A stretch of DNA of 64,000 nucleotides from Eukaryota sp. TZLM1-RC. Taxonomy: Eukaryota > Protista > Metamonada: BaSk clade. Where the stretch lies: positions 1,302,001-1,366,000 of the forward strand of contig JAUPSS010000005.1 of NCBI GenBank assembly GCA_040285825.1. Reading direction: 5' to 3'. The first letter of the stretch is position 1. Every line of letters starts with the position of its first letter. Below, in pieces: positions 3,291-55,521 of the stretch. The translations under genes were made by a program, and so were the position numbers. A model generated the notes under the pieces. That model had not been told where the DNA came from and did no database searches. It saw nothing but the letters and a program-made list of their open reading frames with translations.

Positions 3291-3339
3291 ACATTTACTT
3301 TAAGGAGGAAACATAATCCTGTGAATGTTCTTTCGCGAC

Positions 3340-21223: not shown

Positions 21224-21226
21224 TGA

Positions 21227-33200: not shown

Positions 33201-36200
33201 AATGGAACTGCTGGGGAATCGAAAACAACCATACAATGGGATGAACAATGAAAATCATCAGTATAAACATCTAAAACAGTTTCAGGACCAAAGTAAAATG
33301 AACCAGAATCAAAATCAAAAGAACTTAAGAAAAAGGAGGAATAAGTATTCAAGAATGAGAACCTATCCATTGAAAGATAACCATTAAATTCAGTAACTGA
33401 TCCAGGGAGCAAATCAAAGCTTTTATGTCCAAATTCATAACCAAATTTAGTTCTTGAGGGACCCAGTCTAATACTAGCAGAGTTATGCAAATGGAAATGT
33501 CCCTTATTATAACCCCCAGCGAGTAAGTAAATTAAACCATCAAGGAAATCCAATCGACCATTTGGCTCAATAAATAATTCAAAAGAACAATCGAAAGAAC
33601 CACCAATAGATCGAGAAACCGAACCAAATATTGAAAGTTTGGCTGAATTGTGGAAATTTCTAGACGAAGTAGATCCAGTGTAAAAAAGATTAGGACCATT
33701 CAATTCAAAAACAGAGGACTGTTCAATAACGATTTCAGTATTACTAAAACCAATAATTTGCCCTCCATCATAAACTCCGTGGGTAGTAATTGTAAACAAA
33801 ACACCTTGACGGAAATTCTTAGTTCCTTCACTAGTGAGCAAAGCAGTCACAGAAGTAACATCGGTATAGAAATGTCCTGAATTAAAAACCAAATCATCAA
33901 TAAATGCATGATCCGAGCCACCTAATGATGATGTGTCAATGGTAGCTCTGGTGATTAACAAATCATTATCAGTTGAACTGGTCAACTGGGAAGAAGATAA
34001 TGAGAGTTCTTCAATTTTAATGGAATTGGGGTTGGAATAAAATGTAATGTCTGAATTGGAACTTTCAAGTTTAGTTACCTTCAATGATTTGGTTGTTTCA
34101 GTGATGAGCTCTGCATTATTGATTTGTAAAAGAGAGTGGTAAATATTAGGGAAATTTTCATATTTGAGCTTTCCATCACTCACAAATACAGAATTTTTGA
34201 ACGTAACCGGCTTCTTAATATCTTTCCAATGAACAAAGGACTTGGAGCCATATAATTGGTAAAAGTAAACATTCAAAGAACGACGAAGATCAAAAATGTG
34301 AAGAATTCCAGAGACTTCAAGGTGATTAAGTGTCCATAAAGGACCTGAAACACCATTGAATTCTGCCTTACCTGGGTGAAATACTGTAAGGTTATGAATT
34401 TCAAATGAACATAAAGACTCAAAGTAAACAGACCCAAATTCAATCAAAACTGAAGGATTTAAGGAAAACAAGCCATTGAAAATAACAGTTGGTGAGGAGG
34501 TAATAGAAGATTCAGTATAACCAACATTGAGATAAGTAAATGGACCAATTAATCTGGAGTTTTCATCAAATTCATAAACTCCCTTGTCCAAAACATTAAA
34601 TTCACAATCGCCAATTAATTCAAGAGTTCCAGTAAAAAAAGATCCAAAAGAAAAACTGAAAAGTGTTTCATTAGCTTTTCCAATTCCATGAAACTCAACA
34701 AATAAATCAAAAATAATAGAAACACTTGTAAATTCAACATCACCACCAAGAATTAAAACATTACCTTTACTATCTTCATTATTGGAATATAAACTGGTAA
34801 ATGTTTGGAAATTAGTATTCATAGAAGATTCAAAATCAAACAAGGAATCACTTCCAAGAAGAATAGTTGGGTTTTCTATGAAATCTATGGTGTTTTTCAC
34901 CGAAATTGTAGAATCATCAATAAATTTAAAGTGCTCTGAACCTATATAAGCTTGGGCTTCTGGACCAGTTTCAATCAAAGCACTGTCAATACTACCGCCA
35001 AACCATTCAAAATATTCTGTAACAAAAAGTAAATCGTCTCCAGAAACAGTTGAATTACCATGAATTTTGACAACATCAATAGTAACATCATGATTAGTAT
35101 TGAATGAAACAAAAGTACCGTTAATGTTGAGGAATTTGAGAACAAGAGGGGTAATTAATTCATCAAAAATAAGAGAACCCCCATTTAAATCCATTCCATT
35201 TATAATTAAATTACCATATAAATCTTTGAAAATAACATCGCCTCCAGCAACTCTTAATGAATCAATAGTAATATCCTGTTCAATAGTATCAAATTCCACA
35301 ATTCCAGATAAAAGATTAATAAAAGGAATATTCACTTCACCTTCAATGTTATTAAAAGATAGTTCACCATCTTCGACAACTAAACCAGGAACAAAAACAC
35401 TACCTCCAACAAAAGTTAATTCAAACTTACCATTAGTTGTGTATAAAGGTTCATTCAAATTAAAATCACCACCAATATTGATAAAGTTAATTTCTGAATT
35501 CAGCCCAGTTAAAGAAGGAATATAAACCTTTGAGCCAACTGAATTAACGAATAACTTGGAATCAACAAGGTCAAGAGGTGTGGAAATAAGGAAATTATTA
35601 CCAATTTCAAGAAAATTAAGAACAGTATTGATAGAGATTAAAGATTCAATTAATAAATCACTTCCAATATAATCAATTTGTTTAAATGAATCAGTAAATG
35701 ATGCATTTTGGATAATGAGAGACTCTTGAATTGAAACTACAATGAAAGTGCTGTTTAAAACATCTAACATTGCAGTAATAAAAGAATTTCCGATAGAACT
35801 TATGTTAAAATCGCTGTCAAAAATTTCAACAGAATTAATTAGCCAATCATTTCCAACTATGTTTGATTTGAAAGCAGAATGAACAATTGACATTGAATTT
35901 TCCACAACAAAATTGTTGTTCACCTCTCCAAAAGTAACTGTTGAATTAATTGAATGGAAATCAAAAATTAAAACGTCTCCAGTAATAAGGCTAGAGTAAA
36001 ACAGACCATTTTCTAAATAAAATAAAGGGGTTACAAACTCACAAGACAAAGAATTTAAAACAGCCATACCCCCTGTAATGTATAATAAAGAAACATTGAA
36101 AATACCAGTGTTTGGACATTCAGAAAACTCAATAGAACCCCCTTTTTGAACAACTAAAGAAGAAATGTTGTAAACAGAGCCATCCATAAAATGTAAATAC

Positions 36201-39200
36201 CCAGAACCAAGAATTATATTAGGATCAAGTAAGAAAACACCTTCAAATAGTACAGAAGAACCATCAGTAATAAAGTAAGTGGCATCCAAGGTATTATTTA
36301 ATCCTCTTAATTTGGAATGAGAAGGAAAGATAAAATGCCCATCGGCCAATTCAAGAGTACAATTAGCACATAAAACAATATCAGAATCAAACGAACCACC
36401 TCCAGCAATTCTAAATTTAGAATCATCAATGACATTAATTTGGGCCTTTGACTCAATAAACCAAGAAATATCAAAATCATTCATCACATTTAAGACTGAA
36501 TCAGCTGAAGATAAAAGAAAAGTGGCAACTCCCTCAGCACTGTGCCAAACAGAAGGTTGAATAATAGAAATATTGGCAGAACCAAAAACTTCAAACTTTG
36601 CATTGTAATGGCCATGGAAAACACCAGAAGAATCTAAAACTAAGCTACCATGAAGAGCAATGTTCGAGTTTGGTAACAAATGCTTGTCTCCATTGCCAAG
36701 AAGAAAAGTAACAGAAGAATGTGAAAGAGTTAAATGGGAGTCACCAGTAGAAATAGACCCTTGGTTAATAAATAATTGTTCCTTAAGAAGTGTTGGATAA
36801 TTGGTGAAAGAAAAGATTCCGCTTTCTAAATCAATAAACGAAACTTGTGTCTCCGAATCTTCAATAACCATAACAGAGTCATTCTTAATAGAAATCAAAG
36901 GTAAATACAAATTGTTGCCTGTGGAGCTGGATTTAATGAGTAAATCACCTCCCATTAAATTAACGTCATGAAGATAGAGAGAATTAACTGACTCGAATAA
37001 AGAAGAACCGCCAACAGACGAAAAATTGGTCAAAATAGTGAATCCTGTAGTAGAAGTGCTAGATTCATAAACAAAATTACCATTCTCAACAAGAATAGAA
37101 GTCAATTCAATATCATCTGAGTCTTTAAAGTTCAAACTACCATCCTGATGAATGTAAAAAGGATCTAATAAATAATTGCCTGAATAAACAACACTAGCAT
37201 TAGATTTGGTAATTAAATAACTAGGAGATTGGCGAATAATTGACTTGGAATCAAAATAATAGTCTACCACTTGATCACAGAAAGGTAAATAAAAGGAATC
37301 AAAAATAACAACATTGCCGATATCTAGTGTAGTGGATTTCAAGTCACTTCCTCCTGTTAAAATTAAAGAATCAGCTATTGAAAAGACAGCATTACCAGAA
37401 ATAAAAGGATCTATGGTAGTATTTTGAAGTAAATTAATCGAACAATCCTCAAATTCAAACTCTGCTCTTGGAAATTCTACTTGTTTAAAGTGAATAGCAC
37501 TGGGGACATTGACGACATCCCGGAACAATAGTTGAGATTCACCAAACAAAAGCTCATCAACCTCGGAAGTAATATCAACCACTTTATTAAAAATTAATTT
37601 GGCTTTCGAGGTAATAGTTTTGATGGAATTAGTCTCAATTAACAAGGACGAAAGATATTCAGTAGTACCAGACTCTTCAAATGTTCCACCTGAAAAAATA
37701 GAATCTTTGTTGATGGTTAAATGATCAGAACCTTTTCTAATTGAGGAATTATAAACATTAAAATAATCATTAATAATAACATCATCTCCTGTATAAAGAC
37801 TCAGTATAGCTGAATTGAACAAAGCTAAATGAGGAATAGTTGAAGCAAATTGAAAATTATTTAAGTTTAAATTGCCGAAAAGATCAATTCCTGGAACATC
37901 AAATTCAAATTCAACATTAGCAAAAGAAAGGGTACCTTGGTCAGAAATGTCAAGATTCTCCAAAATTTTGATTGATTTTGACTTTGTTTGAGTAAAAGAA
38001 ACAGGATTATTTGATTTCAACTCAAGGTTATTGTAAACGGAATCGTCAACCGAATGGAAAACAACTCTACCAGCAGATAGTACAAAATGAGAAACATTAA
38101 TGGTGTTGATATCAACAGCCTCAAAGTGAGCTGAATTAGTGGTGTTTTGATGGAAATTATGCATTGAAATAAAATCTACTTTTGAAAATGCTGAGCTGTA
38201 TTCATTAATAAATGAATTAATTATTAATGAATCAGTAGATGAAACCAAAAAATCAGATTCTACCAAATTAAACACCTCAGAAACTTCAACAAAATCAGAA
38301 ATAAACTTAAAATAAACCACACTGAGAGAATTAATAAAGATATCAGAAGTGAAATTATGAACTTTTTCAACACCAAAAGTACTATTAACCAATGAAGAAA
38401 TGTGTGGTATTACAATTGATGAAACATCAGTCAACTTAAATTCACATGAATTAATCTGATAAATAAGAGGACTAGATAGAGAAAGAACTTGATCAAACAC
38501 AGAGAGCGAATCATGAGTTTGGTTAAATTCAATAAAGTCTAACGAATCTGAAATATATGTGGCCTTCATAGTAGAACTATTTGCTATATAAGAATCAATA
38601 GAAACTGATCTTGAATCGGTTAGAACAGTATTGGAATTGCGAGATTGATTCAAACTACCAAAAGACAGTGTCTCAACATCATTTGAAATAAAGTCAGAGG
38701 TTACAGATTCCAAAGTGCTCACAACCAAACTATTCAAAATAGAAGCCTTAAATTGAGAATCCTCATTCATTAAGATTTGGTCAATAGATACTGTTCCCAT
38801 AGTGTTGAGTTGAAGGCCAGCACTAAAAGACATTGAAACAAATGGTAGGTCTAAATCAGCTGCCATATTATCCACCACAAGTTGAGCATTAGTTAGCTGT
38901 ACAATGGGTAGTATCAAGTGATTCATATGAGAATTAACATATAATCGGGACCTAGTACCAACCAAGTTACTAATAGTAACAAGCCCAGTAAGATTGTGAA
39001 AGGTTACAGCTCCAGAAAATTCCAATGAACTAATTAATAAGGATTCTGAATTCCCAATAGCATGACCATTAAAAGAACCTCTATTAATGACAACATAATC
39101 AACTTGGATAGGAGGTAAAGATTCAAAAAGTGAAGTAACTCTGTTTAAGTTAATTTCAGATAAGATCCATTTGGTAAAAGAGAAATCTATATTGAAGAAA

Positions 39201-42200
39201 GTCAATTCACCACTTGAACCTGAGATTTCTGTTACATTTCTAATAAAAGCATTAAAGAATTTCAAAGAACCAAAAGGTTTTGAGATAAAATGAGAAGCAG
39301 AATAATTACCATAAAAAGAAATTTCCCCATAACTACCAGGATTAAGTAAACCTTTGCCGTGTACAACAGATCCTTTAACAAAAGTGACTTCATTAGAACC
39401 AGTCGAGACAAAAGAGTTTTCTGCTAGGGAAAAGGTACCATAAATACCAATTAAACCAGTAAACAAGCAGAAATGACAATAATAAGAGTCGCTGAATAAA
39501 AATTCTTGCTCCCAATATTTTCTGCAAAACCAATAATTGGCAAAAATGCAAAGAATTAGCACCAAAAACCCAAATTGATATCCAAATAATGATGCACTTA
39601 GAGAAAATGGTACAGTGATTAAAAGAATATTACCATTAACAAATACTGATAAAACCATCAAAATTCTCAAAGGACAGATAGTTTGTCCTTTAGATTGAGT
39701 AAGTGAATAAATAGCATTTTCTGAAAGTGAAGGTTTAGTTAACCGTTTCAAAACTGTGTTGTAGAAATTTCTGGAAAATTTCAGATAATATTCACCAAAT
39801 ACCAACAAAAAAGCAAGTGTTAGATTGCAAACGAGTGCAATTGTCAAAGTAAAAACATTGTTTTTAATACAAACAAAGCCATACCTATTAGTTCCTGCAA
39901 TACAGTTAGTACAATCAATTCCTCTTGTATTGAATTGACATTGATTGTTTCTACATGAATACCTATAGGGACATGAAATTAAACCTGTTTCGAGGTTGAC
40001 CATATAACCATATGAAACAGTGGTTAATTCACCATATTCACAACTAGCAAATTTTGGGCACTTGACACAACTTGTCTCATCATCAAATTCAGATTTTGGA
40101 CAAATGCATTGACTAAAATTCGAAGAACCAATTGTTCTGGTAATTTTGTACAGCGGACAATTGATACATTGTCCTAACATAGGATTATCCAAATAATAAC
40201 CCAATGGGCAAGGTTCGCACTCCCCTACAGACCCAAGAACTGTGCCTGGTTTACAATGACATTCGTTATTTAGGTTAATTCTAGTCGAATCACAGTCCTT
40301 CATGGTAAGCTCAATTGAAGCAAAATTTGTTTGATAAGAAAACAATATTTCAATATCAACCAATGGTAAGCCAGTGATTTCCAATTCACTTGAACTTGAC
40401 ACATGGTGGGTACTCACTGAGTCATGGAATGATTCAATTTCAAACAAACTGAGTATTTGGGTATAATTAATCAGTATATCTTGTGTTTTTAGGGTTAAGT
40501 TGAGCTTAATGATGACGCAACTGGAATGAAACACGTTTAAGCGACTACACTGATCAATTTGAAGAACATTAACTAATAAATCTGTTTTGAATTCTTGCAA
40601 AAGTAGAAAGTTCAACTTTGTATTACCGGCAACATTAAGTTGAGCTGAATGATTTCCTGGATGGATACCTTGACTATCAAACTGAATTGAATTAGGCGAA
40701 TTGATATAATATTCATTATAACTGAAAGTTGCAAAATTCACTAAATTATGTTGGTTAGACTCAAAACAATTAACCAGTAAGTTGAAGGCATCACGACACT
40801 GTAATTCTATAATGAAAGTGTTTGAATTCAGAATAATTGTGTCATTAGGTAGGAAAACAGAATGTGGTTCGTGAGGTTCAATTAATGCACTTAATTCTGA
40901 AGTTGAATAATAACATTCAAAAGAAGAAAATGAATAAGTGACGGCGAATGGTTCAGTAATAACTTGACTTAGGAGTGTATTGTCTAATAATGAATAAATT
41001 GAGTCCAGATTTTCCATTCTCTTTCCTGCAAATTTATAATAACCATCGATAAAAACGAAATCTCCAACAGATGTTATTCCAAGAAAATCATCAATTGGTC
41101 TCAAACACTTGCTACTTTTGTATCCATAAAGCTCTATTTCAAATATCAGTAAGTCTTCAAGTATTTCAAAGGTAATAGAGTTGACATTTCCTAAGTCAAC
41201 CTCAATACTACACATTAAAGCATCATCAAAACCATTCAAAAGTGATTCACATTTCCATAAATCATTGGTGGTATTACCAAGCCTAGTTGGTGAGTATTGG
41301 AAGGAATACGAGCATGAAGAATTTGTCGTCAATGTAATAGAAGTAATTTGGTAGGTTTCAGCAAACTGAATGATCAGCTCATCTCCAGCTCGTAAACTAG
41401 AATAGCATTCACCAGATGCAACAAAGCAACACCTAGTTTTATCGAATAAATGACTTAATGGTTCAGTATTGATAACCAAATCTGAATATTGAACATAAAA
41501 AAGTTGATCAGGAACAAAACACCGATCAACAAAAAAAGGTTCAGAATTTAACTCTAAAGTGCCAATTTCCAAGTCATAATAGTAAATACTAATCTTTACA
41601 AGGACTTTGTAAGTTGGAATAATGACCTTTTTACAAATCAGATTAAAACTATCAATCAAGACTGTAAAAAATTCATCCTCTATGACACAATATATTGGAG
41701 GTTCCAGCTCAGTATCAGTTCTAATAACAACATCTCTGGGTTCAAATATGGAGACCGTGGATTTGGATAAGAACTCAACGTCAAAAATTTGTAATTGTGA
41801 TACAATCATTGGTCCAAATAAATCAGAAATTAATTCCAAATCGACAATACTGACAGCGTTGGTCAATGTCAAATCACTTGGTTTGAAAACAATCTCAATT
41901 ATTGAAATGTAATTATTTAAATTCTTTACAAAAGAAATCAATTTCAAAGCCAAATTCTTGCCTTCAATAGAAAGATAATAATCATTGAAGCTACTGAATG
42001 CTGCTGAAATTGACAGTATTATTGTGACAGTATCACATTTAACAAAATAATTATTTCCTAACAACTCTAATTTTGGTGGTTCAACAACATCAAATATAAA
42101 CTCTTTCATAAGTTTTGACTCGTTATAATGAACCACTAATTCAATTACACAAACTTCCAATTCAGATCCAAGCACTTCCAACTCGACATTATTGAGTGTT

Positions 42201-45200
42201 GATGAATGGTTAACAAAGCATTCACCCAAAGAAGTAATTTCAAAATTTGTAAAAAGCTCGGGAAAATTAATGGCAAAATTGTAAGGAAGATTTAAAGCAA
42301 TAAACTTTGACACATGGTCCAAACTAATCATTTTTGAAACAATTTTGGAGTTTAAAGTAATGATCGTGGAGTCTGCCCGTGGACTCAAAGAATTTTCCGC
42401 AGGGTATATTTTGAAAAACTGAGAAGCGTGAAATAATTCTAAATAAGACTGAGTGTAATGGGAGTGCACAATCAATTCTGAATTAGGGAAATAAAAAGGA
42501 ACAATAACAATGAAATCATCACAATTAACAGTAAATAAATCAACAACGCTACCAAAACCAATATACTGCAATGATTGGTAACCTATAGAGGTAAAATCAA
42601 CAGTGAATGATGCAAACTGTTCTGCTACATGGGAAAGATCAATTGCTTTGCCCCCAAAGATAAATGATTTTTTCCACAAAATGCTGTTGTAGAAATCAAA
42701 ATTTTCACCTGTCAAAGTCATCAAAACATCAGTTGACCTATATTCCCATTGAACTGAACTTGGACTTAACGAATCAACCGAAACAGCCTTTGGTAAGTCA
42801 TGAATAGTGTTACAATAGAATCTGGTACATAACCTCAACCTTGCTTCGGTTTTGCCTTCCTGGAATACTAACTTGACAGACATACATCCAGTTTCAAGAA
42901 CCTTGTAGTCAATTACCTGGACGTCACCCTCACTTTGTGGATAATAATCGTATATATTGATAGAGTATAAATCTGCACATATTTCAATTATACATAATTG
43001 CTTAGTGATACATATGAATTCTGTAGGTAAAACAGAAAAATCAACAATTGGTAGTTCAATCAAATGTGCAAAATCATGAGAAAGATCAATCAGGAGCTGC
43101 AAATTATGTACTCCAGAAAGGTTAAAATGGAGCTCAAATTCAGTTGGACCAGCAACCTTCCAGTTTAAAGGAACATTTCCAACAACTTCTATTTCATTGC
43201 ATTGGGTAAGAGTATCAAAGGTTAATTTCTGATTAAATGTCAGAGTAATTACCTCAACAAAAGGGTCGAGTGACTGTGTACTCACATTATATGATGGCAA
43301 GTTGACTGACCATTTATAAATATTTGATGCTAAACCATCAACTTCAACTACAAGCGAAACATTGGAAGAAAAGTCACAAATATTGTGTACTTGTAAAGAT
43401 AATTCAGTATGATTGACAGAAGCAACAGAATAAAGTATATTTGCATTATTAAAATTAACATGAATGGCATCTGTACTGTTGAAAAAGTTTTGCCCTTTGA
43501 TGAATACAATATTTTGAAACGAAAAAGAATTAGGGTCAACATTATACAAAACAGGTAGTTCAAAACAAAAGGTCATTAATACAACAATGTCATCAAGACT
43601 TCGTTTGACTTCTAAGACATGACAACCCGTACCTGGAGGAACATTAACGGTAATGTTCTCGTGTTTGATGGGTGTCCCTGGTATAGTAAAAATAATAGTA
43701 CTACTGGAAATGAATAATAAAGCATAACCTAAATTAGTTCCATTCAATATAAATTCTTTACCCTGAGTTGGTATTGGAGGGAGTGCAACCGTGGGTGCAC
43801 ACAAGTCAAAAACTTGTTTATGGTTAAATTGTAACTGTGGTAACGAAAAATGCACTTCCAAATGACGAAGGGAGCTGTGAACAGCATAATTATCCTCAAA
43901 CATTATTGAAATAAAATCAATAGAGGAAAATATTTGTTTTGAAACAGAATGGAATACTTCAATAAACACAAAATATCTTATTAGTTCTGCATTATCAAAG
44001 CTCAACTCAATAATCCATTCCTTTGTACCAACACATTCATCAATAGATGATAATGTACCAATCATTAACTCTAAATTTAGGTATTTATCTTTGCCCAAAA
44101 TCGAGCTTTTCTCATCCAACTCAATCGACGTCGCTAATACTGAATGATTTGTATTTAAGTGCATTGTAGAATTGATAAGAGATATCTTTGTGGCAAATAA
44201 ATTGTTAGGAAACTCGAGCAAATATGCAGTCGAGTCTTTGATCGATAGTTCCAAGAAAAGTGTTACATCAACAACACAGCCAATCAAGTTTGATTGAAAA
44301 ATGATAAATGTTGAATTAATCGAATTCACCATAGAGTTTTTTTCATTGCAAGCGAAAACATTAGATATTCCATTAAAACTATGGCCAGCCATTTCTAATT
44401 TAGTCACCTCTAAATAGCTCTTGTCTATATCAAATAAGTTACCATTGACAATCGTGAGATTGGTTAAAAAAGTTCTAAGAAACTGATTAATTGATTCTAG
44501 TGAATAAAATAATGAATAAATCTCACAGTCAGAAACAAAAAAATTAATCAAACACAATTGAGAGTCAATAACTTCAATTAAGGGAGAATGAGAAATAAAA
44601 TTTTCAATGGAAATATTTCTAATGGCAACATAACTGGAGTCTTGGGCTAGCAATAACTGGCCTATTGAGTCACTAACAACAGCATTATTTAACTCAAAGC
44701 TGGATGATGTGGAATTAATGAATAAAGAGCATTGATAATTGGACAGATTTAGCGAAGTAAAAACCACTTCACTAGTGATGGCTTTTATGAGATTTACGTT
44801 GAAGTTTACAACAAAACAATCAGTAATATACATAAATGATTTGGTAGAAAAAAGAAGTGAGGGATTCAATGAACCAAAATTAGTGAACATTAATGAATTA
44901 TCAAAAGCAGTTACATCATTTGCGTAATCGATTGCTAAATCATTTTCTTCATCAGACAGTATTTCTTTAACATTATCAAATCCTAAACCGGTGGCTTGAA
45001 AGTTGCAATTGGTTAACATAATTTGCCCAACTTGTTTTGAATCACGAAAATGTACATTGTTGATAAAAATAGTGGAATCCGTGACAACAATAGATGATGC
45101 TTGTGAATCAACAACAACTACATCATCAAAATCAAGTTTAGAATTATCAAGTGTAATAAGAGGGTTTTCATTGGTACATTGATCGATAAATTCGATGTGT

Positions 45201-45226
45201 TTAAATGTAACGATGGATTCCGACAA
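21227..45226 (-). CDS. 7,999-aa uninterrupted ORF, central part of a giant modular surface protein (beta-helix repeats, IPT/TIG-like, discoidin-like, ephrin-receptor-like Cys-rich, internal TM cluster)
   Basis: 24-kb open frame in AT-rich DNA. Motifs include ILNGTNLG / IKGQNF / LTGENF, LIIQFAETYQITSITL..FEIELYG, CEPCPLGYY..CINCP, FxWxGG repeats and FYLSPIGINDECCG..PC..IILKEGVY. The listed start is not the true start. Confidence 0.9.
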   Translation of the reverse strand: MSESIVTFKHIEFIDQCTNENPLITLDNSKLDFDDVVVVDSQASSIVVTDSTIFINNVHFRDSKQVGQIMLTNCNFQATGLGFDNVKEILSDEENDLAIDYANDVTAFDNSLMFTNFGSLNPSLLFSTKSFMYITDCFVVNFNVNLIKAITSEVVFTSLNLSNYQCSLFINSTSSSFELNNAVVSDSIGQLLLAQDSSYVAIRNISIENFISHSPLIEVIDSQLCLINFFVSDCEIYSLFYSLESINQFLRTFLTNLTIVNGNLFDIDKSYLEVTKLEMAGHSFNGISNVFACNEKNSMVNSINSTFIIFQSNLIGCVVDVTLFLELSIKDSTAYLLEFPNNLFATKISLINSTMHLNTNHSVLATSIELDEKSSILGKDKYLNLELMIGTLSSIDECVGTKEWIIELSFDNAELIRYFVFIEVFHSVSKQIFSSIDFISIMFEDNYAVHSSLRHLEVHFSLPQLQFNHKQVFDLCAPTVALPPIPTQGKEFILNGTNLGYALLFISSSTIIFTIPGTPIKHENITVNVPPGTGCHVLEVKRSLDDIVVLMTFCFELPVLYNVDPNSFSFQNIVFIKGQNFFNSTDAIHVNFNNANILYSVASVNHTELSLQVHNICDFSSNVSLVVEVDGLASNIYKWSVNLPSYNVSTQSLDPFVEVITLTFNQKLTFDTLTQCNEIEVVGNVPLNWKVAGPTEFELHFNLSGVHNLQLLIDLSHDFAHLIELPIVDFSVLPTEFICITKQLCIIEICADLYSINIYDYYPQSEGDVQVIDYKVLETGCMSVKLVFQEGKTEARLRLCTRFYCNTIHDLPKAVSVDSLSPSSVQWEYRSTDVLMTLTGENFDFYNSILWKKSFIFGGKAIDLSHVAEQFASFTVDFTSIGYQSLQYIGFGSVVDLFTVNCDDFIVIVPFYFPNSELIVHSHYTQSYLELFHASQFFKIYPAENSLSPRADSTIITLNSKIVSKMISLDHVSKFIALNLPYNFAINFPELFTNFEITSLGECFVNHSSTLNNVELEVLGSELEVCVIELVVHYNESKLMKEFIFDVVEPPKLELLGNNYFVKCDTVTIILSISAAFSSFNDYYLSIEGKNLALKLISFVKNLNNYISIIEIVFKPSDLTLTNAVSIVDLELISDLFGPMIVSQLQIFDVEFLSKSTVSIFEPRDVVIRTDTELEPPIYCVIEDEFFTVLIDSFNLICKKVIIPTYKVLVKISIYYYDLEIGTLELNSEPFFVDRCFVPDQLFYVQYSDLVINTEPLSHLFDKTRCCFVASGECYSSLRAGDELIIQFAETYQITSITLTTNSSCSYSFQYSPTRLGNTTNDLWKCESLLNGFDDALMCSIEVDLGNVNSITFEILEDLLIFEIELYGYKSSKCLRPIDDFLGITSVGDFVFIDGYYKFAGKRMENLDSIYSLLDNTLLSQVITEPFAVTYSFSSFECYYSTSELSALIEPHEPHSVFLPNDTIILNSNTFIIELQCRDAFNLLVNCFESNQHNLVNFATFSYNEYYINSPNSIQFDSQGIHPGNHSAQLNVAGNTKLNFLLLQEFKTDLLVNVLQIDQCSRLNVFHSSCVIIKLNLTLKTQDILINYTQILSLFEIESFHDSVSTHHVSSSSELEITGLPLVDIEILFSYQTNFASIELTMKDCDSTRINLNNECHCKPGTVLGSVGECEPCPLGYYLDNPMLGQCINCPLYKITRTIGSSNFSQCICPKSEFDDETSCVKCPKFASCEYGELTTVSYGYMVNLETGLISCPYRYSCRNNQCQFNTRGIDCTNCIAGTNRYGFVCIKNNVFTLTIALVCNLTLAFLLVFGEYYLKFSRNFYNTVLKRLTKPSLSENAIYSLTQSKGQTICPLRILMVLSVFVNGNILLITVPFSLSASLFGYQFGFLVLILCIFANYWFCRKYWEQEFLFSDSYYCHFCLFTGLIGIYGTFSLAENSFVSTGSNEVTFVKGSVVHGKGLLNPGSYGEISFYGNYSASHFISKPFGSLKFFNAFIRNVTEISGSSGELTFFNIDFSFTKWILSEINLNRVTSLFESLPPIQVDYVVINRGSFNGHAIGNSESLLISSLEFSGAVTFHNLTGLVTISNLVGTRSRLYVNSHMNHLILPIVQLTNAQLVVDNMAADLDLPFVSMSFSAGLQLNTMGTVSIDQILMNEDSQFKASILNSLVVSTLESVTSDFISNDVETLSFGSLNQSRNSNTVLTDSRSVSIDSYIANSSTMKATYISDSLDFIEFNQTHDSLSVFDQVLSLSSPLIYQINSCEFKLTDVSSIVIPHISSLVNSTFGVEKVHNFTSDIFINSLSVVYFKFISDFVEVSEVFNLVESDFLVSSTDSLIINSFINEYSSAFSKVDFISMHNFHQNTTNSAHFEAVDINTINVSHFVLSAGRVVFHSVDDSVYNNLELKSNNPVSFTQTKSKSIKILENLDISDQGTLSFANVEFEFDVPGIDLFGNLNLNNFQFASTIPHLALFNSAILSLYTGDDVIINDYFNVYNSSIRKGSDHLTINKDSIFSGGTFEESGTTEYLSSLLIETNSIKTITSKAKLIFNKVVDITSEVDELLFGESQLLFRDVVNVPSAIHFKQVEFPRAEFEFEDCSINLLQNTTIDPFISGNAVFSIADSLILTGGSDLKSTTLDIGNVVIFDSFYLPFCDQVVDYYFDSKSIIRQSPSYLITKSNASVVYSGNYLLDPFYIHQDGSLNFKDSDDIELTSILVENGNFVYESSTSTTGFTILTNFSSVGGSSLFESVNSLYLHDVNLMGGDLLIKSSSTGNNLYLPLISIKNDSVMVIEDSETQVSFIDLESGIFSFTNYPTLLKEQLFINQGSISTGDSHLTLSHSSVTFLLGNGDKHLLPNSNIALHGSLVLDSSGVFHGHYNAKFEVFGSANISIIQPSVWHSAEGVATFLLSSADSVLNVMNDFDISWFIESKAQINVIDDSKFRIAGGGSFDSDIVLCANCTLELADGHFIFPSHSKLRGLNNTLDATYFITDGSSVLFEGVFLLDPNIILGSGYLHFMDGSVYNISSLVVQKGGSIEFSECPNTGIFNVSLLYITGGMAVLNSLSCEFVTPLFYLENGLFYSSLITGDVLIFDFHSINSTVTFGEVNNNFVVENSMSIVHSAFKSNIVGNDWLINSVEIFDSDFNISSIGNSFITAMLDVLNSTFIVVSIQESLIIQNASFTDSFKQIDYIGSDLLIESLISINTVLNFLEIGNNFLISTPLDLVDSKLFVNSVGSKVYIPSLTGLNSEINFINIGGDFNLNEPLYTTNGKFELTFVGGSVFVPGLVVEDGELSFNNIEGEVNIPFINLLSGIVEFDTIEQDITIDSLRVAGGDVIFKDLYGNLIINGMDLNGGSLIFDELITPLVLKFLNINGTFVSFNTNHDVTIDVVKIHGNSTVSGDDLLFVTEYFEWFGGSIDSALIETGPEAQAYIGSEHFKFIDDSTISVKNTIDFIENPTILLGSDSLFDFESSMNTNFQTFTSLYSNNEDSKGNVLILGGDVEFTSVSIIFDLFVEFHGIGKANETLFSFSFGSFFTGTLELIGDCEFNVLDKGVYEFDENSRLIGPFTYLNVGYTESSITSSPTVIFNGLFSLNPSVLIEFGSVYFESLCSFEIHNLTVFHPGKAEFNGVSGPLWTLNHLEVSGILHIFDLRRSLNVYFYQLYGSKSFVHWKDIKKPVTFKNSVFVSDGKLKYENFPNIYHSLLQINNAELITETTKSLKVTKLESSNSDITFYSNPNSIKIEELSLSSSQLTSSTDNDLLITRATIDTSSLGGSDHAFIDDLVFNSGHFYTDVTSVTALLTSEGTKNFRQGVLFTITTHGVYDGGQIIGFSNTEIVIEQSSVFELNGPNLFYTGSTSSRNFHNSAKLSIFGSVSRSIGGSFDCSFELFIEPNGRLDFLDGLIYLLAGGYNKGHFHLHNSASIRLGPSRTKFGYEFGHKSFDLLPGSVTEFNGYLSMDRFSFLNTYSSFFLSSFDFDSGSFYFGPETVLDVYTDDFHCSSHCMVVFDSPAVPLELDSVTVQGGGSITLNNFKQSTFIHFHSLLIEDSVVLFNSGQNVNIGALDLISGILEGLDTVQVDSNWNWKSGRIGSPRSFTSTITFVLNSDCESLIETQRPKHLAYGSVLENSGELTLVHYFPFFIYRSSSIVNSGIFFYGKMCGASICDNLANFDFSAVDIDISVEYPDVSFRPTILNTGDFVKLDGTSTLTNNLPFNQTGTGTFTLNGRFNQRNSDSNLDGLFTIYPSALFDIGSSTGTVKQSSVWNGLEGRLRTSSGGTINFNGYYNLTLDFQHSTGRFTFTKHADYELDSITISGGTMNMHQAKERSQIFDLLKIHSSGGTLNIDNVNQVVDIDEFTQTNGVVNIDTLNNYFNISTMTISGSSGHTTIENVAQNVTFVNRVSNTNGKLTMENLQDWLVFQSGIYIGSSHRFDLTTVENNVFTPKSFDLRGAVNFIDLKQKLIIDDYFNVSTSSARVKFSQILNDVIIRKGLFVFNGQTEFNSISGNTFLPFIHAYSGSVKLFTIKELHVSTEILSETSLTVDNYVFIESPRLITRRGSATVFKNGISYIDVDFVQGTGGYCNVITLPTFETKEFQPHGGNFLFQSLSATFILPNFEIRSGSLVELRSFVSFSPELPIVKILDGTLRLASGKVVTIDHLVLDGSNAKRDGNDIANVNNEIFFKQGCFCGGVTKSLQPLRLTTSGRKDIFAELHAKVLCEIMVNNGQIRGNSNGKLYLEDETNITGDFWFSSTTSSNYPVIYVMDTITFSTAQNRRRIDWFIDIAVNTIHYLNDFELLFGDGGGVIRATFDLQPNTKLAFGSNQAINSRTHHLFTATSIVNCDTCTFDFRTNSAWVKYNGQFNLFTEHVQNYGRFELFSTARHPIKKFVLSNCDVHLLHENVDGADTDYNVELFELNQCGRLNIVNSRYNLNIEKLAINGGSVELSNHDHQVHLPSIVINDGALMFNNFKYSWSHPNVTINSGFICLNTGHDVHFDHFVMRNPVDPARVTCFSSINFQPIYNDNSYNNSLLAGYDSVSFDYTQWLGGSIEVDVDFLIDLHSVDAGDRGFSKGKYVNIHDTTNVGGPGDFYLTGPSTWTVLDDAHMEFTSSVDFISNSRSNLPTLINNNHLNFPIPDISVTLDFIIHNYNLFTSEENTEITFNGPSTSYGSSKYLMEDGSGLHLRHYSHTFKDGVIGVGDGNIHMDSWNFNTHTRKWSPENKVLFDGTWDMSPIFIQPTGNWVFGKNAFINLTEIHLTERAHVLVDGSRSASGNWTFDRLNINTHSWFIIDGTDEQISTRSLVMSSDEFIRFRKSSEALEFTDIELYNGEAEFSTSHHLNFQSLIVDGGTKSGSDDITTNEFVWNCGIIEGSGTIYIKNKGTIGTCRSTQWLSNPSAKQLRDTSKLVFLPGSKLFIDTTNAVNLYHSTSIVIEGYTEMINAYFRERSQNNIIRFMGPLTEAISNVYRIFDAPVEISSGEFHLKEGTINPRRPLNVYSSFYSYGNSELLFGHSSINSTHYFHKDSHYFEVIEGFSQAARFEPSTPFIEVIVQGTFSTSLLHFSIGTITFTGPILLDIAEIRLVNHAVLQFISLDNDLGSVRGFDLRGNSLMLFNTGQGIITFDGFGLLDENAEIFGVNDDVQIIGDSASFEWNGGSFAGDITVDLFTSLTIAGQNPKAIHLGAVVIAHEELEWNSNGNLFGYNGSKLVVSEEGSLKFVSNGQFDCIDRFTNTDKVCDAFIEIFGTASIDPFSMRVVSYWGVFVEGKFTLNMGLFEAFSFIRGDGSLIINYGTTFSFTSASEDSLLGPDSNILSTGAINLFEWTTVYIQGTFETDQLVSVGEGTLVFHDSAVLVNQFDLTVVVGNAIFNKVTQMVPLNTVHCEYGNVTFNTESVVTIDDLLIDHGFLHGSDQVEVLNQFLWQGSGGFGKDSNVFCLTNGEATVPDTTRVMEENATLTNKGYFLFSGYQELLGYGSNIINAKEGHVLFTDLIKWERASFTNDSIMDSYFINYGSIDVTVTQFDCGFVFVHYGVLNLILGEFYFAGGGCSFGPVYAMFGTTVGVDDRPFTFESGDNSYIEGNNFFFGLRNPTGIFYLKTRFSLKQCTIKDNGRFYITDDAFISEEVSVVVRGTQVFFEDFINPDISFTSLELGFNSIVSLVTGHHIIIDELLINGGFRGGTDTVTVKNQFQFRAGGGFQDESITYAEQGSIFIDIFEKEFKDLSTVIFNGPVIWRQESDIRGGLNTTIVFNDVLEIHDTGNFVLYDWDEYEPMTSPNPITIPSQHLTPDSLPVVFVNHGMDLTSDWENIEFKFEWELQNKGNITIPETFVMKVLSGGFDSHPSRLLSSPGSTLEVGDPYPYIFDEESWFYAEKSIIKMTPGSLMSFDGFVCFDSAVIGPAGTIIIRENATMCRPTGIILEGTELIFEEDTEICDFTLKGDYKFHLGELLSITCSFTWYRGVIHGRSFIFIEPQATFFLKLDPEINQPKEDKIYHVLGEGTSFVNYGFGLIKYDLYGDVGAKFVNKGDLNLQAGNWVIHDNQNASLPCLINKNDLVIETSGVVNFDWNITQQSGRFKLKQGHFNVNGFGIVSDQFEIGSETILTINSGFTFFNSNVRLHSPNLVLNDSLITFSNCSVYWGDIDYDFNYENSILTFDEDTTSKSSPGLFTLTDGLIEILDVSNEFTLNKFKQTGGLLYVSSLVSDPIITNYQFQGGVINSAFAWSVTDFVFESGEFVGSEVFSPQKFTIKTDGEKICNTNLNILSGVFESGTVLGTDNCVISSPNFTIATQSLAKLDGCSAIYKNQKLLHVKSGTFEFNFGELNGGEVLVDSHLLFTKCQTLVNSRLNVSNDGKVSFDSEVVFSESSKIVGSGMIEINSNVVIDGIVDFKGCFVISACGNLTLDSATVNNMKMCPPIFYLSPIGINDECCGPSTYPCLSVSKIIEKMGNNGTIILKEGVYNETNFDIDFEFLDVVFQGEGESKMTEIHISCEVIVKNSNLEFSFVQLIYFGTSRFVFLAESTVTFNKMEIIGGCANDEPLITLVKSNVYFDDVVLVGCQSQSIVAIDSTIDLETVLVRDSTATDGHFELTKTTLTMNDVNFQGLEGNVFNIQDNAKVTGTNVGISDSNSNSDDLIVINNSDLTLTTVDLSDTKFSNIIDSKTSTITITDFDIVHHESNTGSFINADDSTFNFTNVKTLGPVDSDGNVISGCANDEPLITLVKSNVDFDDVVVVGCQSQSIVATDSTIDLEAVLVRDSNATDGHFALTNSNFTATDVEFNHLEGKVFDVKSDSKVEGVNVKVIDTNTNNDSMMVTDSSTIDLKQAEIINSCVRPAFKSIDSTVIIADLKVSHPNTYSGSIFDASSNSELTLDNIKIVKESTTSTTVTCLFTDPLFTVDNSEVTLADSSLIGHWSQTLVGINNADVTFTHVDVLDSQASGHVELTNSNFTAFDVEFNNLEGKVFDVNSDSKVQGLNVKVIDTTTNNDPMMVTDSSTIDFKQTEIINSCVRPAFESIDSFIKIDDLKVSHPNTYSGSLFDASSNSELTLDNINIVKESTASTTVICSFTDPLFIVDNSEVTLADSSLIGHLSQTLVGINNADVTFTNVDVLDSEASGHVELTNSNFTATDVEFNNLEGKVFDVNSDSKVQGLNVKVIDTTTNNDPMMITDSSTIDLKQTEIISSCVRPAFKSIDSTIKIHDLKVSHPNTYSGSLFDASSDSELTLDNINIVKESTTSTTVTCSFTDPLFTVDNSEVTLADSSLIGHLAQTLVGINNADVTFTNVDVLDSEASGHVQLTNSNFTATDVEFNDLEGKVFDVKSGSVFDGLRLQILNIDTPSEALMKISSSKFSLIDSQILDSSVFRLIDSISKSEISLNNLDIIDLTSYPGSFINADDSTLDFTNVNTLGPVDSDGKVISGCANDEPLITLVKSNVDFDHVAVVACHSQSIAATDSTIDLDTVLVRDSTATDSHFEFTNSNLKARNVFFQNLLSQASINIQRASNFQSKPIKFQSNFQS
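21841..23470 (-). repeat. 528-bp (176-aa) coding tandem repeat, ~3 copies, flanked by a second repeat type (GCANDEPLITLVKSNV...) at ~21350-21620, 23460-23740 and 24000-24180
   Basis: The marker cttcaaga recurs at 21841, 22369, 22897 and 23425. Confidence 0.92.
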
Positions 45227-46690
45227 GGAAATAGACTTTGCAATTCCAGAAAAAAAAAGAACTTGATAAAAGTGAATTCCAAATTGGAATTGCTTACAAT
45301 AACTTCACATGAAATGTGTATTTCGGTCATTTGTGAGTCACGTTCACCTTGAAATACTACATCCAAAAATTCTAAATCTAAATCGAAATTAGTTCCATTA
45401 TAAACACCTTCTTTCAAAATAATTGTCCCGTTATTACCCATTTTTTCAATGATGTTACTCATTGACAAACAAGGGTATGAAGAGGGACCACAACACTCGT
45501 CATTAATTCCATTGGGGGACAAGTAAAATTTTGAAGGACACATTTTCATGTTGTTTACAGTTGCAGAATCCAAAGTCAATGTGTGACACGCTGAATTAAC
45601 AAAACATCCATTGAAATCAACAATTCCATTAATAACCACATTACTGTTGATTTCTATTATACCAGTTCCAACAATTTTAGAACTTTCTGAAAACACTACT
45701 TCGGAATCAAACGAAACTCTACCATCATTTGAAACATTTAATCTAGAATCGACCATAGTGTGGCATTTCGTGAACAAAAGATGAGAATCAACAAGAAGCT
45801 CACCTCCGTTCAATTCAGCAAAGTTAAATTCAAAAGTTCCAGATTTAACATGTAATAATTTTTGGTTTTTGTAAATAGCAGAACATCCTTCAAGTTTGGC
45901 CAAAGATTGTGTTTCAATAGTAAAATTGGGACTAGAAACTACACAATTATCGGTACCTAGAACAGTTCCAGATTCAAAGACTCCAGACAAAAAATTGAGG
46001 TTAGTATTACAAATCTTCTCCCCATCAGTTTTGATTGTGAACTTTTGGGGGGAGAAAACTTCAGAACCAACAAACTCACCTGATTCGAAAACAAAATTTG
46101 CAACAGACCATGCAGAAGCAGAGTTAATAAGACCACCTTGGAACTGGTACTTGGTTATAATTGGATCAGAAACCAAAGATGACACATAAAGCAAGCCACC
46201 AGTCTGTTTAAACTTATTTAAGGTAAACTCATCAGAAACATTCAAAATTTCAATTAAACCATCAAACCATCAGTCAAAGTGAAAAGACCGGGAGAGCTTC
46301 CCATCACAGCATCAGTTATACTAGATGAACTTCCATCATGGAATAACAATTGACCACCAGCAACGTCCCACAACGAATCTGAAAAATCGATTCTAGAATT
46401 TTTAGTAATGTTAATTAAACCTGAATAAACTACCTCTACAATAGAAAGATTTTTGATTAAAACATCTAAAATTTGAGTAGATCCGCCAGAAATATTGAGC
46501 TTCAACTCGTCAATAATTCCAAAAGCTTGAAATTAACCCCCAGTTTGAACAATAAAACCTTTTTCAACGTAAAGATCCTGAGCAAAGGTAACTTCACCAT
46601 CATCAATCAATAACTTTCCAGAATGATCAACTAAACCATCAATAACAACATAAGATTCTGGTCTAGAAACGTGAATATTTCCAGGTGAAT
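45118..46690 (-). pseudogene. Disrupted segment of the giant locus; 45200-46299 duplicates 24180-25283
   Basis: ORFs 45118-46245 and 46254-46505. Lesions: A9 run at 45250, 8-bp duplication 46257-46272, TAA at 46533-46535, 409-bp deletion near 46690. Confidence 0.85.
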
Positions 46691-49600
46691 TTTCATATTT
46701 TTAGTAATACCAGAATCATAAATTTTACCTCCTTTCCAAGTAAAAACATTAGAAACTTCAATAATGCCAAAACCAGATCTTTTTCCACCATTCATAAAAA
46801 GATTTTCTATATAAAGATCATTAAAGGAATTGAAAAATAATTCACCCCCATCTATAATAACAGTTTCAAATAAAGGTTGGGTTTGAACAGAAGAATCAAA
46901 AATAATGAGATCGCCACCAGTTAAATGAAGAGACGAATTAATTATGGAAATTTGGAACATTGAATGGAAAACAACCTCACCACCATTAATTTCGATTTGA
47001 GATTGATTGAAATCTATAGTAGAAATTTCAAATAAATTAACAATTCCTCCATTACAAATTATTGATTGATATTGTTGAATTACTGTTCCAAATACATTGA
47101 GTTGTCCACCATTTACTTCACTATTGATCAGATTTACTTCTGAGTCTTCTTTAAAGTTGACTATTCCGCTATTTATAACAAGATTGACTTGGTCAACCAA
47201 AACATTGTTGGCAAAAGTAACTTCACCATCATCAATGAATAACTTTCCAGAATGATCAACTAAATCATCAATAACAACATAAGATTCTGGTCTAGAAACG
47301 TGAATATTTCCTAGTGAATTAGAAACAATTGAAATATTTAAAAAGTCAAAATTTCCTGTTAATTCCAATGTGCAACTTTCATCAATTTGAATTGTATTAG
47401 TAGAAAAAGAGTCTGTTCCAATTGATAAAGTACCATTTTCAATTAAAACCAAATCATGGTTTTGGAGACCCAGAAGAAATTCAAAAGTGTCAGCAGTGGA
47501 AATTTTAGCAAATATACCATAATTGATAAATAAAGGCAATGCTTCATTTTCAGAAGTGGGATTCAATTCACCTTGGCCTCCAATTTCAAAGACAGCATAT
47601 GGCTTATTGATGATTCTGGTAAAAGCACCAGCTTCAAGTGTTCCTTCAAGAAGGGTCACATTACCATAATTAACCAAAGTGTGACCATCATCTATCTCCA
47701 TTAAGGAGTCACCTTCAACCAGCATTAGTTTCATATTTTTAGTAATACCAGAATCATAAAGTTTACCCCCTTTCCAAGTAAAAACATTAGAAACTTCAAT
47801 AATGCCAAAACCAGATCTTTTTCCACCATTCATATAAAGATTTTCTATATAAAGATCATTAAAGGAATTGAAGAATAATTCACCCCCATCTATAATAACA
47901 GTTTCAAATAAAGGTTGGGTTTGAACAGAAGAATCAAAAATAATGAGATCGCCACCAGTTAAATGAAGAATGGAATTAATTATGGAAATTTGGGATAATG
48001 GATGGAAAACAACCTCACCACCATTAATTTCAATTTGAGATTGATTGAAATCTATAGTAGAAATTTCAAATAAATTAACAATTCCTCCATTACAAATTAT
48101 TGATTGATATTGTTGAATTACTGTTCCAAATACATTGAGTTGTCCACCATTTACTTCACTATTGATCAGATTTACTTCTGAGTCTTCTTTAAAGTTGACT
48201 ATTCCGCTATTTATAACAAGATTGACTTGGTCAACCAAAACATTGTTGGCAAAAGTAACTTCACCATCATCAATGAATAACTTTCCAGAATGATCAACTA
48301 AACCATCAATAACAACATAAGATTCTGGTCTAGAAACGTGAATATTTCCTAGTGAATTAGAAACAATTGAAATATTTAAAAAGTCAAAATTTCCTGTTAA
48401 TTCCAATGTGCAACTTTCATCAATTTGAATTGTATTAGTAGAAAAAGAGTCTGTTCCAATTGATAAAGTACCATTTTCAATTAAAACCAAATCATGGTTT
48501 TGGAGACCTAGAAGAAATTCAAAAGTGTCAGCAGTGGAAATTTTAGCAAATATACCATAATTGATAAATAAAGGCAATGCTTCATTTTCAGAAGTGGGAT
48601 TTAATTCACCTTGGCCTCCAATTTCAAAGACAGCATATGGCTTATTGATGATTCTGGTAAAAGCACCAGCTTCAAGTCTTCCTTCAAGAAAGGTCACAAT
48701 ACCATAATTAACCAAAGTATGACCATCATCTATCTTCATTAAGGAGTCACCTTCAACCAACATTAGTTTCATATTTTTAGTAATACCAGAATCATAAAGT
48801 TTACCTCCTTTCCAAGTAAAAACATTAGAAACTTCAATAATGCCAAAACCAGATCTTTTTCCACCATTCATAAAAAGATTTTCTATATAAAGATCATTAG
48901 AGGAATTGAAAAATAATTCACCCCCATCTATAATAACAGTTTCAAATAAAGGTTGGGTTTGAACAGAAGAATCAAAAATAATGAGATCGCCACCAGTTAA
49001 ATGAAGAGACGAATTAATTATGGAAATTTGGGACATTGAATGGAAAACAACCTCACCACCATTAATTTCGATTTGAGATTGATTGAAATCTATAGTAGAA
49101 ATTTCAAATAAATTAACAATTCCTCCATTACAAATTATTGATTGATATTGTTGAATTACTGTTCCAAATACATTGAGTTGTCCACCATTTACTTCACTAT
49201 TGATCAGATTTACTTCTGAGTCTTCTTTAAAGTTGACTATTCCGTTATTTATAACAAGATTGACTTGGTCAACCAAAACATTGTTGGCAAAAGTAACTTC
49301 ACCATCATCAATGAATAACTTTCCAGAATGATCAACTAAACCATCAATAACAACATAAGATTCTGGTCTAGAAACGTGAATATTTCCTAGTGAATTAGAA
49401 ACAATTGAAGTATTTAAAAAGTCAAAATTTCCTGTTAATTCCAATGTGCAACTTTCATCAATTTGAATTGTATTAGTAGAAAAAGAGTCTGTTCCAATTG
49501 ATAAAGTACCATTTTCAATTAAAACCAAATCATGGTTTTGGAGACCTAGAAGAAATTCAAAAGTGTCAGCAGTGGAAATTTTAGCAAATATACCATAATT

Positions 49601-50110
49601 GATAAATAAAGGCAATGCTTCATTTTCAGAAGTGGGATTTAATTCACCTTGGCCTCCAATTTCAAAGACAGCATATGGCTTATTGATGATTCTGGTAAAA
49701 GCACCAGCTTCAAGTCTTCCTTCAAGAAAGGTCACAATACCATAATTAACCAAAGTATGACCATCATCTATCTTCATTAAGGAGTCACCTTCAACCAACA
49801 TTAGTTTCATATTTTTAGTAATACCAGAATCATAAAGTTTACCTCCTTTCCAAGTAAAAACATTAGAAACTTCAATAATGCCAAAACCAGATCTTTTTCC
49901 ACCATTCATATAAAGATTTTCTATATAAAGATCATTAGAGGAATTGAAAAATAATTCACCCCCATCTATAATAACAGTTTCAAATAAAGGTTGGGTTTGA
50001 ACAGAAGAATCAAAAATAATGAGATCGCCACCAGTTAAATGAAGAATGGAATTGGCTATGGAAATTTGGGACAATGGATGGAAAACAACCTCACCACCAT
50101 TGATTTCGAG
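46592..50110 (-). repeat. 1038-bp (346-aa) near-identical coding tandem repeat, ~3.4-3.8 units, with the last unit deleted by 409 bp
   Basis: The marker cttcaccatcatcaat occurs at 46592, 47221, 48259 and 49297. Confidence 0.93.
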
Positions 50111-55264: not shown

Positions 55265-55521
55265 TGTGACATGGAATAAATATGAGCGAAAAATTGCTAA
55301 TAGAAGCTTTGAAGCCCAAGGACTGTCAGATTGGACTTGAGACTAGTTGATAGCTACTCAGTTGTTTGAAGAAAAGCAGACACAACTGACACTAGCAAGA
55401 GTAAGAGACCTCCATGGATATAGAAAACGAGATCACAAAGACATTATTCAGACTTTGGTTAGAATTGACATAGCTAGAAGAGATAAGGTCGGGCCTTATT
55501 CAGTACATAATTTGTTCGATA

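Follow-up and report, generated by a model that had tools for sequence, protein, structure and literature searches.

Can a single open reading frame join two giant surface proteins in the middle of a membrane domain, and is the product of such a union a working protein or a relic? This question is raised by a stretch of 64,000 nucleotides (nt) from the genome of Skoliomonas litria, a free-living metamonad flagellate of soda lakes, in which an open reading frame (ORF) of 7,999 amino acids (aa) occupies 24 kilobases (kb) of the minus strand (21227..45226) and begins at TTG. The stretch, referred to below as the window, has a GC content of 33% and corresponds approximately to positions 1302001-1366000 of contig JAUPSS010000005.1 of assembly GCA_040285825.1; all coordinates given here are counted from its first letter. 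An earlier, sequence-only reading took the ORF for an in-frame chimera of a multi-pass receptor, cut inside its transmembrane (TM) domain, and a second ectodomain of about 6,000 residues. We found two gene parts joined in frame, and the locus is probably best explained as a young non-functional remnant of a derived microhomology rearrangement within a cluster of giant surface-protein genes that is rich in repeats; that it is a remnant we infer from the state of its two ends.

The source of the window, TZLM1-RC, is the type isolate of Skoliomonas litria (PMC11603281), and its genome was assembled with ABruijn from R9.4 nanopore reads at 41x coverage, with Illumina correction at 206x (PMC11316075). 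Relatives of the proteins encoded here are entered in GenBank as hypothetical proteins of "Eukaryota sp. TZLM1-RC", and the GenBank gene calls were read from a fetched locus (L003) equivalent to window 28899-8303. Coverage of the locus in the public sequencing runs is very sparse and consists solely of contigs of 151-297 nt, and a search for RNA runs found none. No paper linking Skoliomonas with surface proteins was found in the literature searched.

A Receptor Gene Interrupted within Its Membrane Domain

Self-BLAST of the window aligned 39436-43138 with 60298-64000 at 98.46% identity over 3,703 nt, without gaps and with 57 differences. The match to this second copy, the paralog, ends sharply at 39436/60298, and at its other end it leaves the window at 64000. 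In the DNA alignment both copies read ...GGTATTTATGGTA on the minus strand and then diverge; at the protein level the ORF reads ...FTGLIGIYG|TFSLAENSFVSTG... (GLIGIYG-TFSLAENS) where the paralog reads ...FTGLIGIYG|KLIDSNFDIETLLL... (GLIGIYG-KLIDSNF) and has 94 further residues before its stop. The junction is in frame, and the stop-free run that passes through it extends over 8,025 codons, against a mean of about 14 expected at this base composition. The core observation, i.e., the identity break together with the in-frame join, is correct and far beyond chance. The sequence-only reading had put the end of the identity at 39436, on which self-BLAST and DNA alignment agree, and had the paralog continue through more helices to a stop, as its translation does; the claim that the locus is an in-frame chimera is likewise upheld by the open codons across the join and by ten relatives that keep the helices missing here.

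The receptor-derived segment, R' (39437..45226, minus strand; ORF codons 1-1930), was delimited by Pfam matches, by the identity to the paralog and by homology to the protein P0001, of which residues 1481-3306 match ORF codons 104-1929 with 59% identity over 1,826 residues. It consists of one beta-rich repeat, a TIG domain (Pfam, 2e-6), a long ectodomain, an Ephrin_rec_like cysteine-rich stalk (3e-9) and membrane helices 1-4, and it contains the conserved region of about 1,830 aa, ending in that stalk, by which members of the receptor family can be told. The paralog has the same stalk followed by helices 1-7 and a stop (60014..64000, minus strand, defined by translation, self-BLAST, family alignment and a seven-helix model), with helices 5-7 encoded by 60017-60298 on the minus strand.

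A full-library HMMER search with the last 400 residues of the paralog returned 45 proteins with E<=1e-10, nine of them with E<=1e-30; those of the nine whose source was looked up all come from Skoliomonas isolates. Ten relatives of 456-5,489 aa from three Skoliomonas species (P0001, P0002, P0004-P0008, P0012, P0023 and P0025) were aligned in a family alignment of 13 sequences that included the chimera and the paralog. In all ten the complete module forms the extreme C-terminus and, as in the paralog, runs on beyond the breakpoint through helices 5-7; P0001, for instance, reads ...GLIGIYS-KLIDLRLDVEVFLL... at this point. The chimera leaves the alignment after helix 4, and its seven-helix C-terminal domain is incomplete. 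Since the paralog and all ten relatives continue through helices 5-7, the cut membrane domain is the derived state.

An AlphaFold model of the paralog C-terminus, built from a 14-sequence alignment, contains seven long helices with a mean predicted local distance difference test (pLDDT) score of 76, the membrane part reaching 80-94. The junction falls between residues 306 and 307 of the modelled sequence, within helix 4 (291-309) and three residues short of its end, which agrees with the earlier claim of a receptor cut inside its TM domain with four helices kept. Hydropathy and the model place the retained helices 1-4, the fourth without its last three residues, at 39437..39856 on the minus strand (codons ~1791-1930). 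Judged from hydropathy, the receptor would have its N-terminus outside and its C-terminus inside, because the 45-residue loop that follows helix 1 is rich in lysine and arginine, and the cut would lie at the outer end of helix 4.

By its sequence, the upstream half of the chimera is a member of the giant multi-pass receptors of Skoliomonas (P0001/KAL0207699.1, P0002, P0004-P0008 and others), with which it shares the cysteine-rich stalk and helices 1-4, and it differs from them in the lack of helices 5-7 and of the signal-peptide-bearing N-terminus. Hydrophobic leaders open P0001, P0002, P0004-P0006 and P0008, whereas no signal peptide on one unbroken frame exists in the chimera, whose frame is broken upstream and cut at 53801.

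P0001, the closest intact relative (L001 10001-20212, JAUPSS010000008.1), has an extracellular RCC1 propeller (WD40_RLD, 6e-114) before the conserved receptor region, and its gene stands alone among unrelated housekeeping genes, with no tandem cluster there. Another copy, P0003 (1,068 aa; L002 10001-14289, JAUPSS010000001.1), parts from the family after helix 2/3, inside the membrane domain; its model requires splicing, and it adjoins a gene for a 2,379-aa Ty3-like retrotransposon of the long terminal repeat type. This window is thus not the only place with a truncated receptor copy, a point in favor of a remnant.

The arrangement of a large ectodomain, a cysteine-rich stalk and seven helices resembles that of adhesion and class C G-protein-coupled receptors (GPCRs), and the stalk superposes on the cysteine-rich domains of Eph and calcium-sensing receptors with Z of 5.4-5.8. 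Neither the paralog nor the chimera has a match to the Pfam 7tm families (7tm_2 included), GAIN or GPS, and an adhesion GPCR (family B2) would have a 7tm_2 domain together with a GAIN/GPS autoproteolysis domain; the helix bundle has no PDB match above noise (Z <=5.3, Foldseek E >0.01). We did not adopt a GPCR identity, given the lack of a Pfam family and fold matches that amount to noise, and "GPCR-like" describes the layout only. The membrane domain of the paralog (60017-60700), modelled with pLDDT 80-94 yet lacking a PDB match above noise, may be an undescribed lineage-specific multi-pass fold.

The Second Parent and the Crossover Point

What follows the junction comes from elsewhere. The only long relative found of the post-junction sequence is P0144 (P9112_003278), an S. 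litria protein of 7,890 aa encoded on a different contig, which starts with the signal-peptide-like MNRLLLLLSLLCYVCANV. ORF codons 1928-3303 match its residues 564-1939 at 81% identity (1,376 aa), and codons 3092-6899 match residues 2195-6003 at 87% (3,809 aa), i.e., the body of P0144 is represented in the ORF. At the equivalent point P0144 reads ...NTEFLIQSSNSPLING|TFSLAESSFVSTGSNEVTFVKG..., its native upstream sequence being ...EFLIQSSNSPLING|TFSLAESS. Homology to P0144 starts at 39445, and tblastn found no homolog of its residues 1-563 in the window. On this homology, the A-type segment at 21230..39436 (minus strand; 6,069 codons) is the body of a second giant beta-rich secreted or surface-protein gene without its leader and about 566 N-terminal residues, which are taken to be lost because the window holds nothing like P0144 1-563. 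The collinear matches also sustain the earlier claim that the second half is a body of about 6,000 aa from another giant gene.

P0144 was the sole match in a word-index search with the post-junction 700 aa and came from the 4,400-14,000 aa band; the same query had no match among proteins of 1,650-5,250 aa, nor did a 400-aa junction-spanning query among proteins of 220-700 aa. A beta-helix fold for the downstream half is plausible but unverified: Pfam, with Chlam_PMP and related beta-helix repeat profiles, has no match in any beta-rich part, the first 500 residues after the junction come out beta-rich when modelled with AlphaFold but with low confidence (mean pLDDT 48), and Atlas feature matches to Fil_haemagg and autotransporter clusters score only 0.76-0.81.

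The order of modules differs between the two proteins. In P0144 the A body (564-6003) precedes a B part (6394-7889); the window has the B part (53801-49313) first, followed downstream by the receptor segment and then by the A body. Two copies of a module of ~240 aa (P0144 5762-6003) are present in the window, at 45538-46263 and at ~24530-25255, with a different sequence after each.

The crossover point could be located with the help of a 151-nt contig from the public runs (X1 record 2, depth 2.3), which matches 39352-39445 with 2 mismatches in 94 nt and then departs. In the frame of the ORF its loose end reads FLIQSSNNPLIYG|TFSLAENS..., a native P0144-like context belonging to a copy that is much closer to the window than P0144 is. 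Identity to the receptor parent extends from 39436 upwards and that to the other parent from 39445 downwards, and because the parental identities overlap there, the crossover lies within the ten nucleotides ATTTATGGTA (39436..39445, minus strand), which code for I-Y-G and are common to both parents, as seen in the paralog and in the native-context contig. The chance of an overlap of at least 10 nt is about 2.4e-5, and the DNA alignment contains neither filler sequence nor a transposon end at the joint. Such a joint is the sequence signature of microhomology-mediated joining, which may have been a deletion between genes of the same orientation or a template switch, and it fits the deletion or recombination that the sequence-only reading had supposed. 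That reading had also proposed to look for a copy with the native sequence upstream of GTFSLAENS to define the microhomology; the contig and P0144 provide it, and with it the 10-nt overlap. The placement of the crossover rests on this one low-depth contig, backed by the protein sequence of P0144. A 30-mer of the native upstream sequence is absent from the window, which means that the native copy lies elsewhere.

The same contig bears on whether the fusion is fixed. The fused form may belong to one haplotype or to a subpopulation of the culture, the two genes still being apart in the other, with the mechanism being the one proposed here and only the population status being different. The contig in the native arrangement comes from the same sample, its depth of 2.3 compares with 2.0-4.6 for single-copy pieces of the window, no annotated S. 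litria protein closer to the region than the 74%-identical P0144 was found, and the isolates were purified by dilution, a single-cell origin not being stated (PMC11603281). On the other hand, 2 differences in 94 nt between contig and window are high for alleles and fit a paralog, and the missing annotated native copy means little, as the 10,715-aa product that GenBank assigns to this locus likewise lies outside the protein search (<=10,000 residues). We regard a polymorphic or heterozygous deletion as unlikely.

Nor do we expect the joint to be an artefact, in which the assembler would have linked an unrelated giant gene to a copy of the receptor, giving a chimera that is absent from the cells. 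The region is highly repetitive, was assembled by ABruijn from R9.4 nanopore reads at 41x and has homopolymer-type frameshifts nearby; in the very sparse public runs no contig spans the junction in the window configuration, and the only contig at the site has the other arrangement. Misjoins, however, fall inside long shared repeats, and this joint sits at a repeat edge, with a 10-nt overlap, clean and in frame; its downstream side differs from the native-context contig, which points to distinct copies, and a 41x consensus requires several concordant reads. An artefact is, in our view, very unlikely.

The breakpoint reads G|GTA in both copies, and the GT could in principle act as a 5' splice site that makes the two endings alternative exons. 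The sequence-only reading had named splicing at TATG|GTA as what would undo the chimera, and this found no support: the window contains no second copy coding for helices 5-7, all relatives read straight through the position as coding sequence, the family member P0001 is a single uninterrupted exon of 3,403 codons, and the sequence downstream of the breakpoint is the coding sequence of another gene from its codon 567 onwards. The absence of a second helix 5-7 exon from the window and the coding nature of the site in the relatives led us to reject the alternative-exon reading, which we consider extremely improbable.

In the explanation that we favor, a copy of the lineage-specific receptor gene, with its long beta-rich/TIG ectodomain, Eph-like cysteine-rich stalk and seven-helix domain, was joined in frame, through a recombination or deletion at ATTTATGGTA (39436-39445), to a giant gene for a beta-rich surface protein like P0144. 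The event removed helices 5-7 and the stop from the first gene, and the signal peptide and ~566 N-terminal residues from the second.

The Broken Ends of the Composite Locus

The sequence-only reading had the ORF end in a single-TM anchor, which in fact lies behind an in-frame TAA (21227..21229, minus strand, from the frame map and the GenBank call), in ORF 19424..21223. The same-frame continuation (19424..21226, minus strand; 600 codons) comprises, by frame map and hydropathy, the C-terminal part of the ectodomain, a single TM helix (~19826-19882) and a cytoplasmic tail, and this helix is the only strong single TM segment (hydropathy 3.09). GenBank ends a 10,715-aa product at the TAA and annotates what follows as a second gene of 589 aa, which starts at ATG 21193 and lacks its own signal peptide. 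Among the fetched proteins, no alignment extends across the TAA. A reading of TAA as glutamine was rejected by inference, since 8,025 consecutive sense codons without TAA, TAG or TGA fit the standard code.

At its other end the 7,999-aa ORF opens inside a beta-rich repeat, its first methionine is residue 70, and there is no methionine followed by a leader. The native 5' part of the receptor-derived gene (45121..53849, minus strand), recognized from the frame map, alignments and P0144 homology, is now split into four reading-frame pieces. These stop-free pieces overlap in a chain on the same strand back to 53849; their homologs are P0144 6394-7889 and 5762-6003 and the stretch of P0001 ahead of its conserved region. 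Five lesions interrupt this 5' part: a 1-nt change in an A9 run (50641-50649, from alignment), a 409-nt deletion (46691, from self-BLAST and alignments), a TAA (46533-46535), an exact tandem duplication of 8 base pairs (bp; 46265-46272) and a 1-nt frameshift beside a T9 run (45250-45266), the last three from alignment. The 409-nt deletion lies in the last unit of a tandem array (46582-50281) of 1,038-bp (346-aa) units that are 95-96% identical, and it shifts the frame. Assembly errors of the homopolymer type do not typically look like the deletion, the duplication or the TAA codons, which leaves at least three robust disabling lesions.

Farther upstream, the gene is truncated by a dispersed repeat (53801..53971, identified from P0144 homology and repeat copies), which supplies the apparent start codon ATG 53843. 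Homology to P0144 begins at 53801, the exact start of this repeat, and 53801-53927 and 53814-53971 match repeat copies at 55916-56041 and 59659-59814. The GenBank product of 10,715 aa falls about 157 codons short of the 53843-21227 span, as would be expected, if it starts from ATG 53843, of a model that skips the lesions by way of short introns. With its 5' part frameshifted and cut off by the dispersed repeat, the composite would lack both a native start and a signal peptide, and a TAA also parts the body from the anchor. The features that may mark a pseudogene are two TAA codons, the 409-nt deletion, the 8-bp duplication, the 5' truncation and the loss of helices 5-7.

A Young Remnant or a Working Fusion

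A rival interpretation of the open frame is that of a functional chimera, which would be transcribed and translated, insert helices 1-4 and expose both the receptor ectodomain and the second domain of ~6,000 aa outward, ending free at the TAA or reading through to the anchor. The topology argument, by which four helices entered from an outside N-terminus end outside again, is sound on paper, and the hydropathy of helix 4 is slightly higher in the chimera (1.46 versus 1.19). The junction is in frame within 8,025 open codons at a GC content of 33%, where a stop is expected every ~14 codons, and GenBank presents the locus as a single gene. Yet there is neither a signal peptide nor a native start, ATG 53843 belongs to a dispersed repeat, at least three robust lesions lie between this ATG and the ORF, and the anchor is behind the TAA. 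Without a leader, the N-terminal domain of 1,790 residues would stay in the cytosol, and the predicted topology would invert or fail. The double-ectodomain protein of the sequence-only reading thus survives as a topological argument, while an intact, anchored protein of 7,999 aa is not supported, given the TAA, the missing start and signal peptide and the broken 5' part. It is because the N-terminal domain could not be exported without a leader that we favor a young remnant and consider a functional chimera quite unlikely.

Several observations weigh against a remnant and deserve to be set out together. The A9 and T9 frameshifts could be long-read assembly errors. The open frame contains about 1,014 site-equivalents where one substitution gives a stop, so that zero stops allow at most ~0.3% of neutral divergence, and the frame may be selected. 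For six lesions distributed over 34.4 kb, a lesion-free gap of 70% is non-random (P ~0.005), a point that also speaks for a functional protein. R' differs from the paralog by 1.5% with a ratio of nonsynonymous to synonymous differences (pN/pS) of 0.68 and has no stops where ~3 are expected. GenBank models one 10,715-aa gene, and the public runs, sparse as they are, hold the native arrangement as the sole contig at the junction. The zero stops and the pN/pS ratio imply that both halves were under selection until recently, which leaves a choice between a very young fusion and a frame that is still being maintained. With a young remnant, the 24 kb that are still open would reflect the recent origin of both halves from functional genes. 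There is also a slim chance that the locus is a snapshot or a working product of a recombination regime by which kilobase-scale modules are shuffled among giant surface-protein genes of Skoliomonas, in which case the 24-kb frame would be maintained through expression as a membrane protein with two giant domains facing outward, or as an open donor cassette for new mosaics.

Comparison with Known Hybrid and Mosaic Genes

The event is of a known kind, a hybrid gene formed by microhomology-mediated rearrangement in a repeat-rich cluster. Haemoglobin Lepore (delta-beta) and the CYP21A1P/CYP21A2 hybrids are genes produced by deletion or unequal recombination between neighbouring paralogs. As in these hybrids, one event joins a 5' part and a 3' part in the same orientation with the loss of the intervening DNA, and both parents persist as separate copies. 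In contrast to them, the partners here are non-homologous at the joint, where they have 10 nt in common, which is microhomology-mediated joining and not homologous unequal crossing-over, and two different architectures are connected in the middle of a membrane domain.

Mosaic surface genes are also familiar from parasitic protists: var genes of Plasmodium falciparum recombine mitotically, and Trypanosoma brucei assembles mosaic variant surface glycoprotein (VSG) genes from pseudogene donors. The Skoliomonas locus resembles these systems in belonging to a large, fast-evolving, lineage-specific surface family with shuffled modules, numerous broken copies and recombinants that stay in frame at short tracts of identity. 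The difference is that var and VSG genes recombine homologous domains and keep their architecture, while the joint described here destroys a membrane domain. Evidence of programmed switching or of expression sites was not found.

The locus is a cleanly resolved microhomology fusion of two of the largest genes of a metamonad, with both parental states recoverable, and it shows that the unnamed giant receptor and adhesin-like families of Skoliomonas undergo duplication, truncation by retroelements and recombination. The 10,715-aa and 589-aa GenBank models are a bridged composite and not one native protein. Should the open frame prove to be expressed, nature would have set up an unusual test of membrane-protein topology; otherwise, the locus is a case of ordinary gene decay in a repeat-rich region.

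Repeats around the Locus

Two copies of a 2.1-kb reverse-transcriptase-bearing retroelement, 97.9% identical to each other and inverted, bracket the 34-kb composite locus. Self-BLAST places them at 13860..15951, where GenBank calls an RVT_1 gene, and at 57116..59208, where no called gene was found on look-up of the window ORF 57787-58671. The inverted pair could be a substrate for inverting the bracketed segment.

On either side of the locus, repeats associated with retroelements contain pieces of the cysteine-rich stalk, 185-580 nt long and 91-98% identical, at 17043-17608, 18573-19148 and 55506-55690 (compare 39940-40505 and 60802-61367); GenBank annotates one of these pieces as a 198-aa protein with an Ephrin_rec_like match (P0009, window 18303-18899). 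Finally, the 3' flank of the paralog past its stop (59711-59976) recurs in inverted orientation at 54315-54570 (80.5% identical), some 470 nt upstream of where the composite is cut off at its 5' end.

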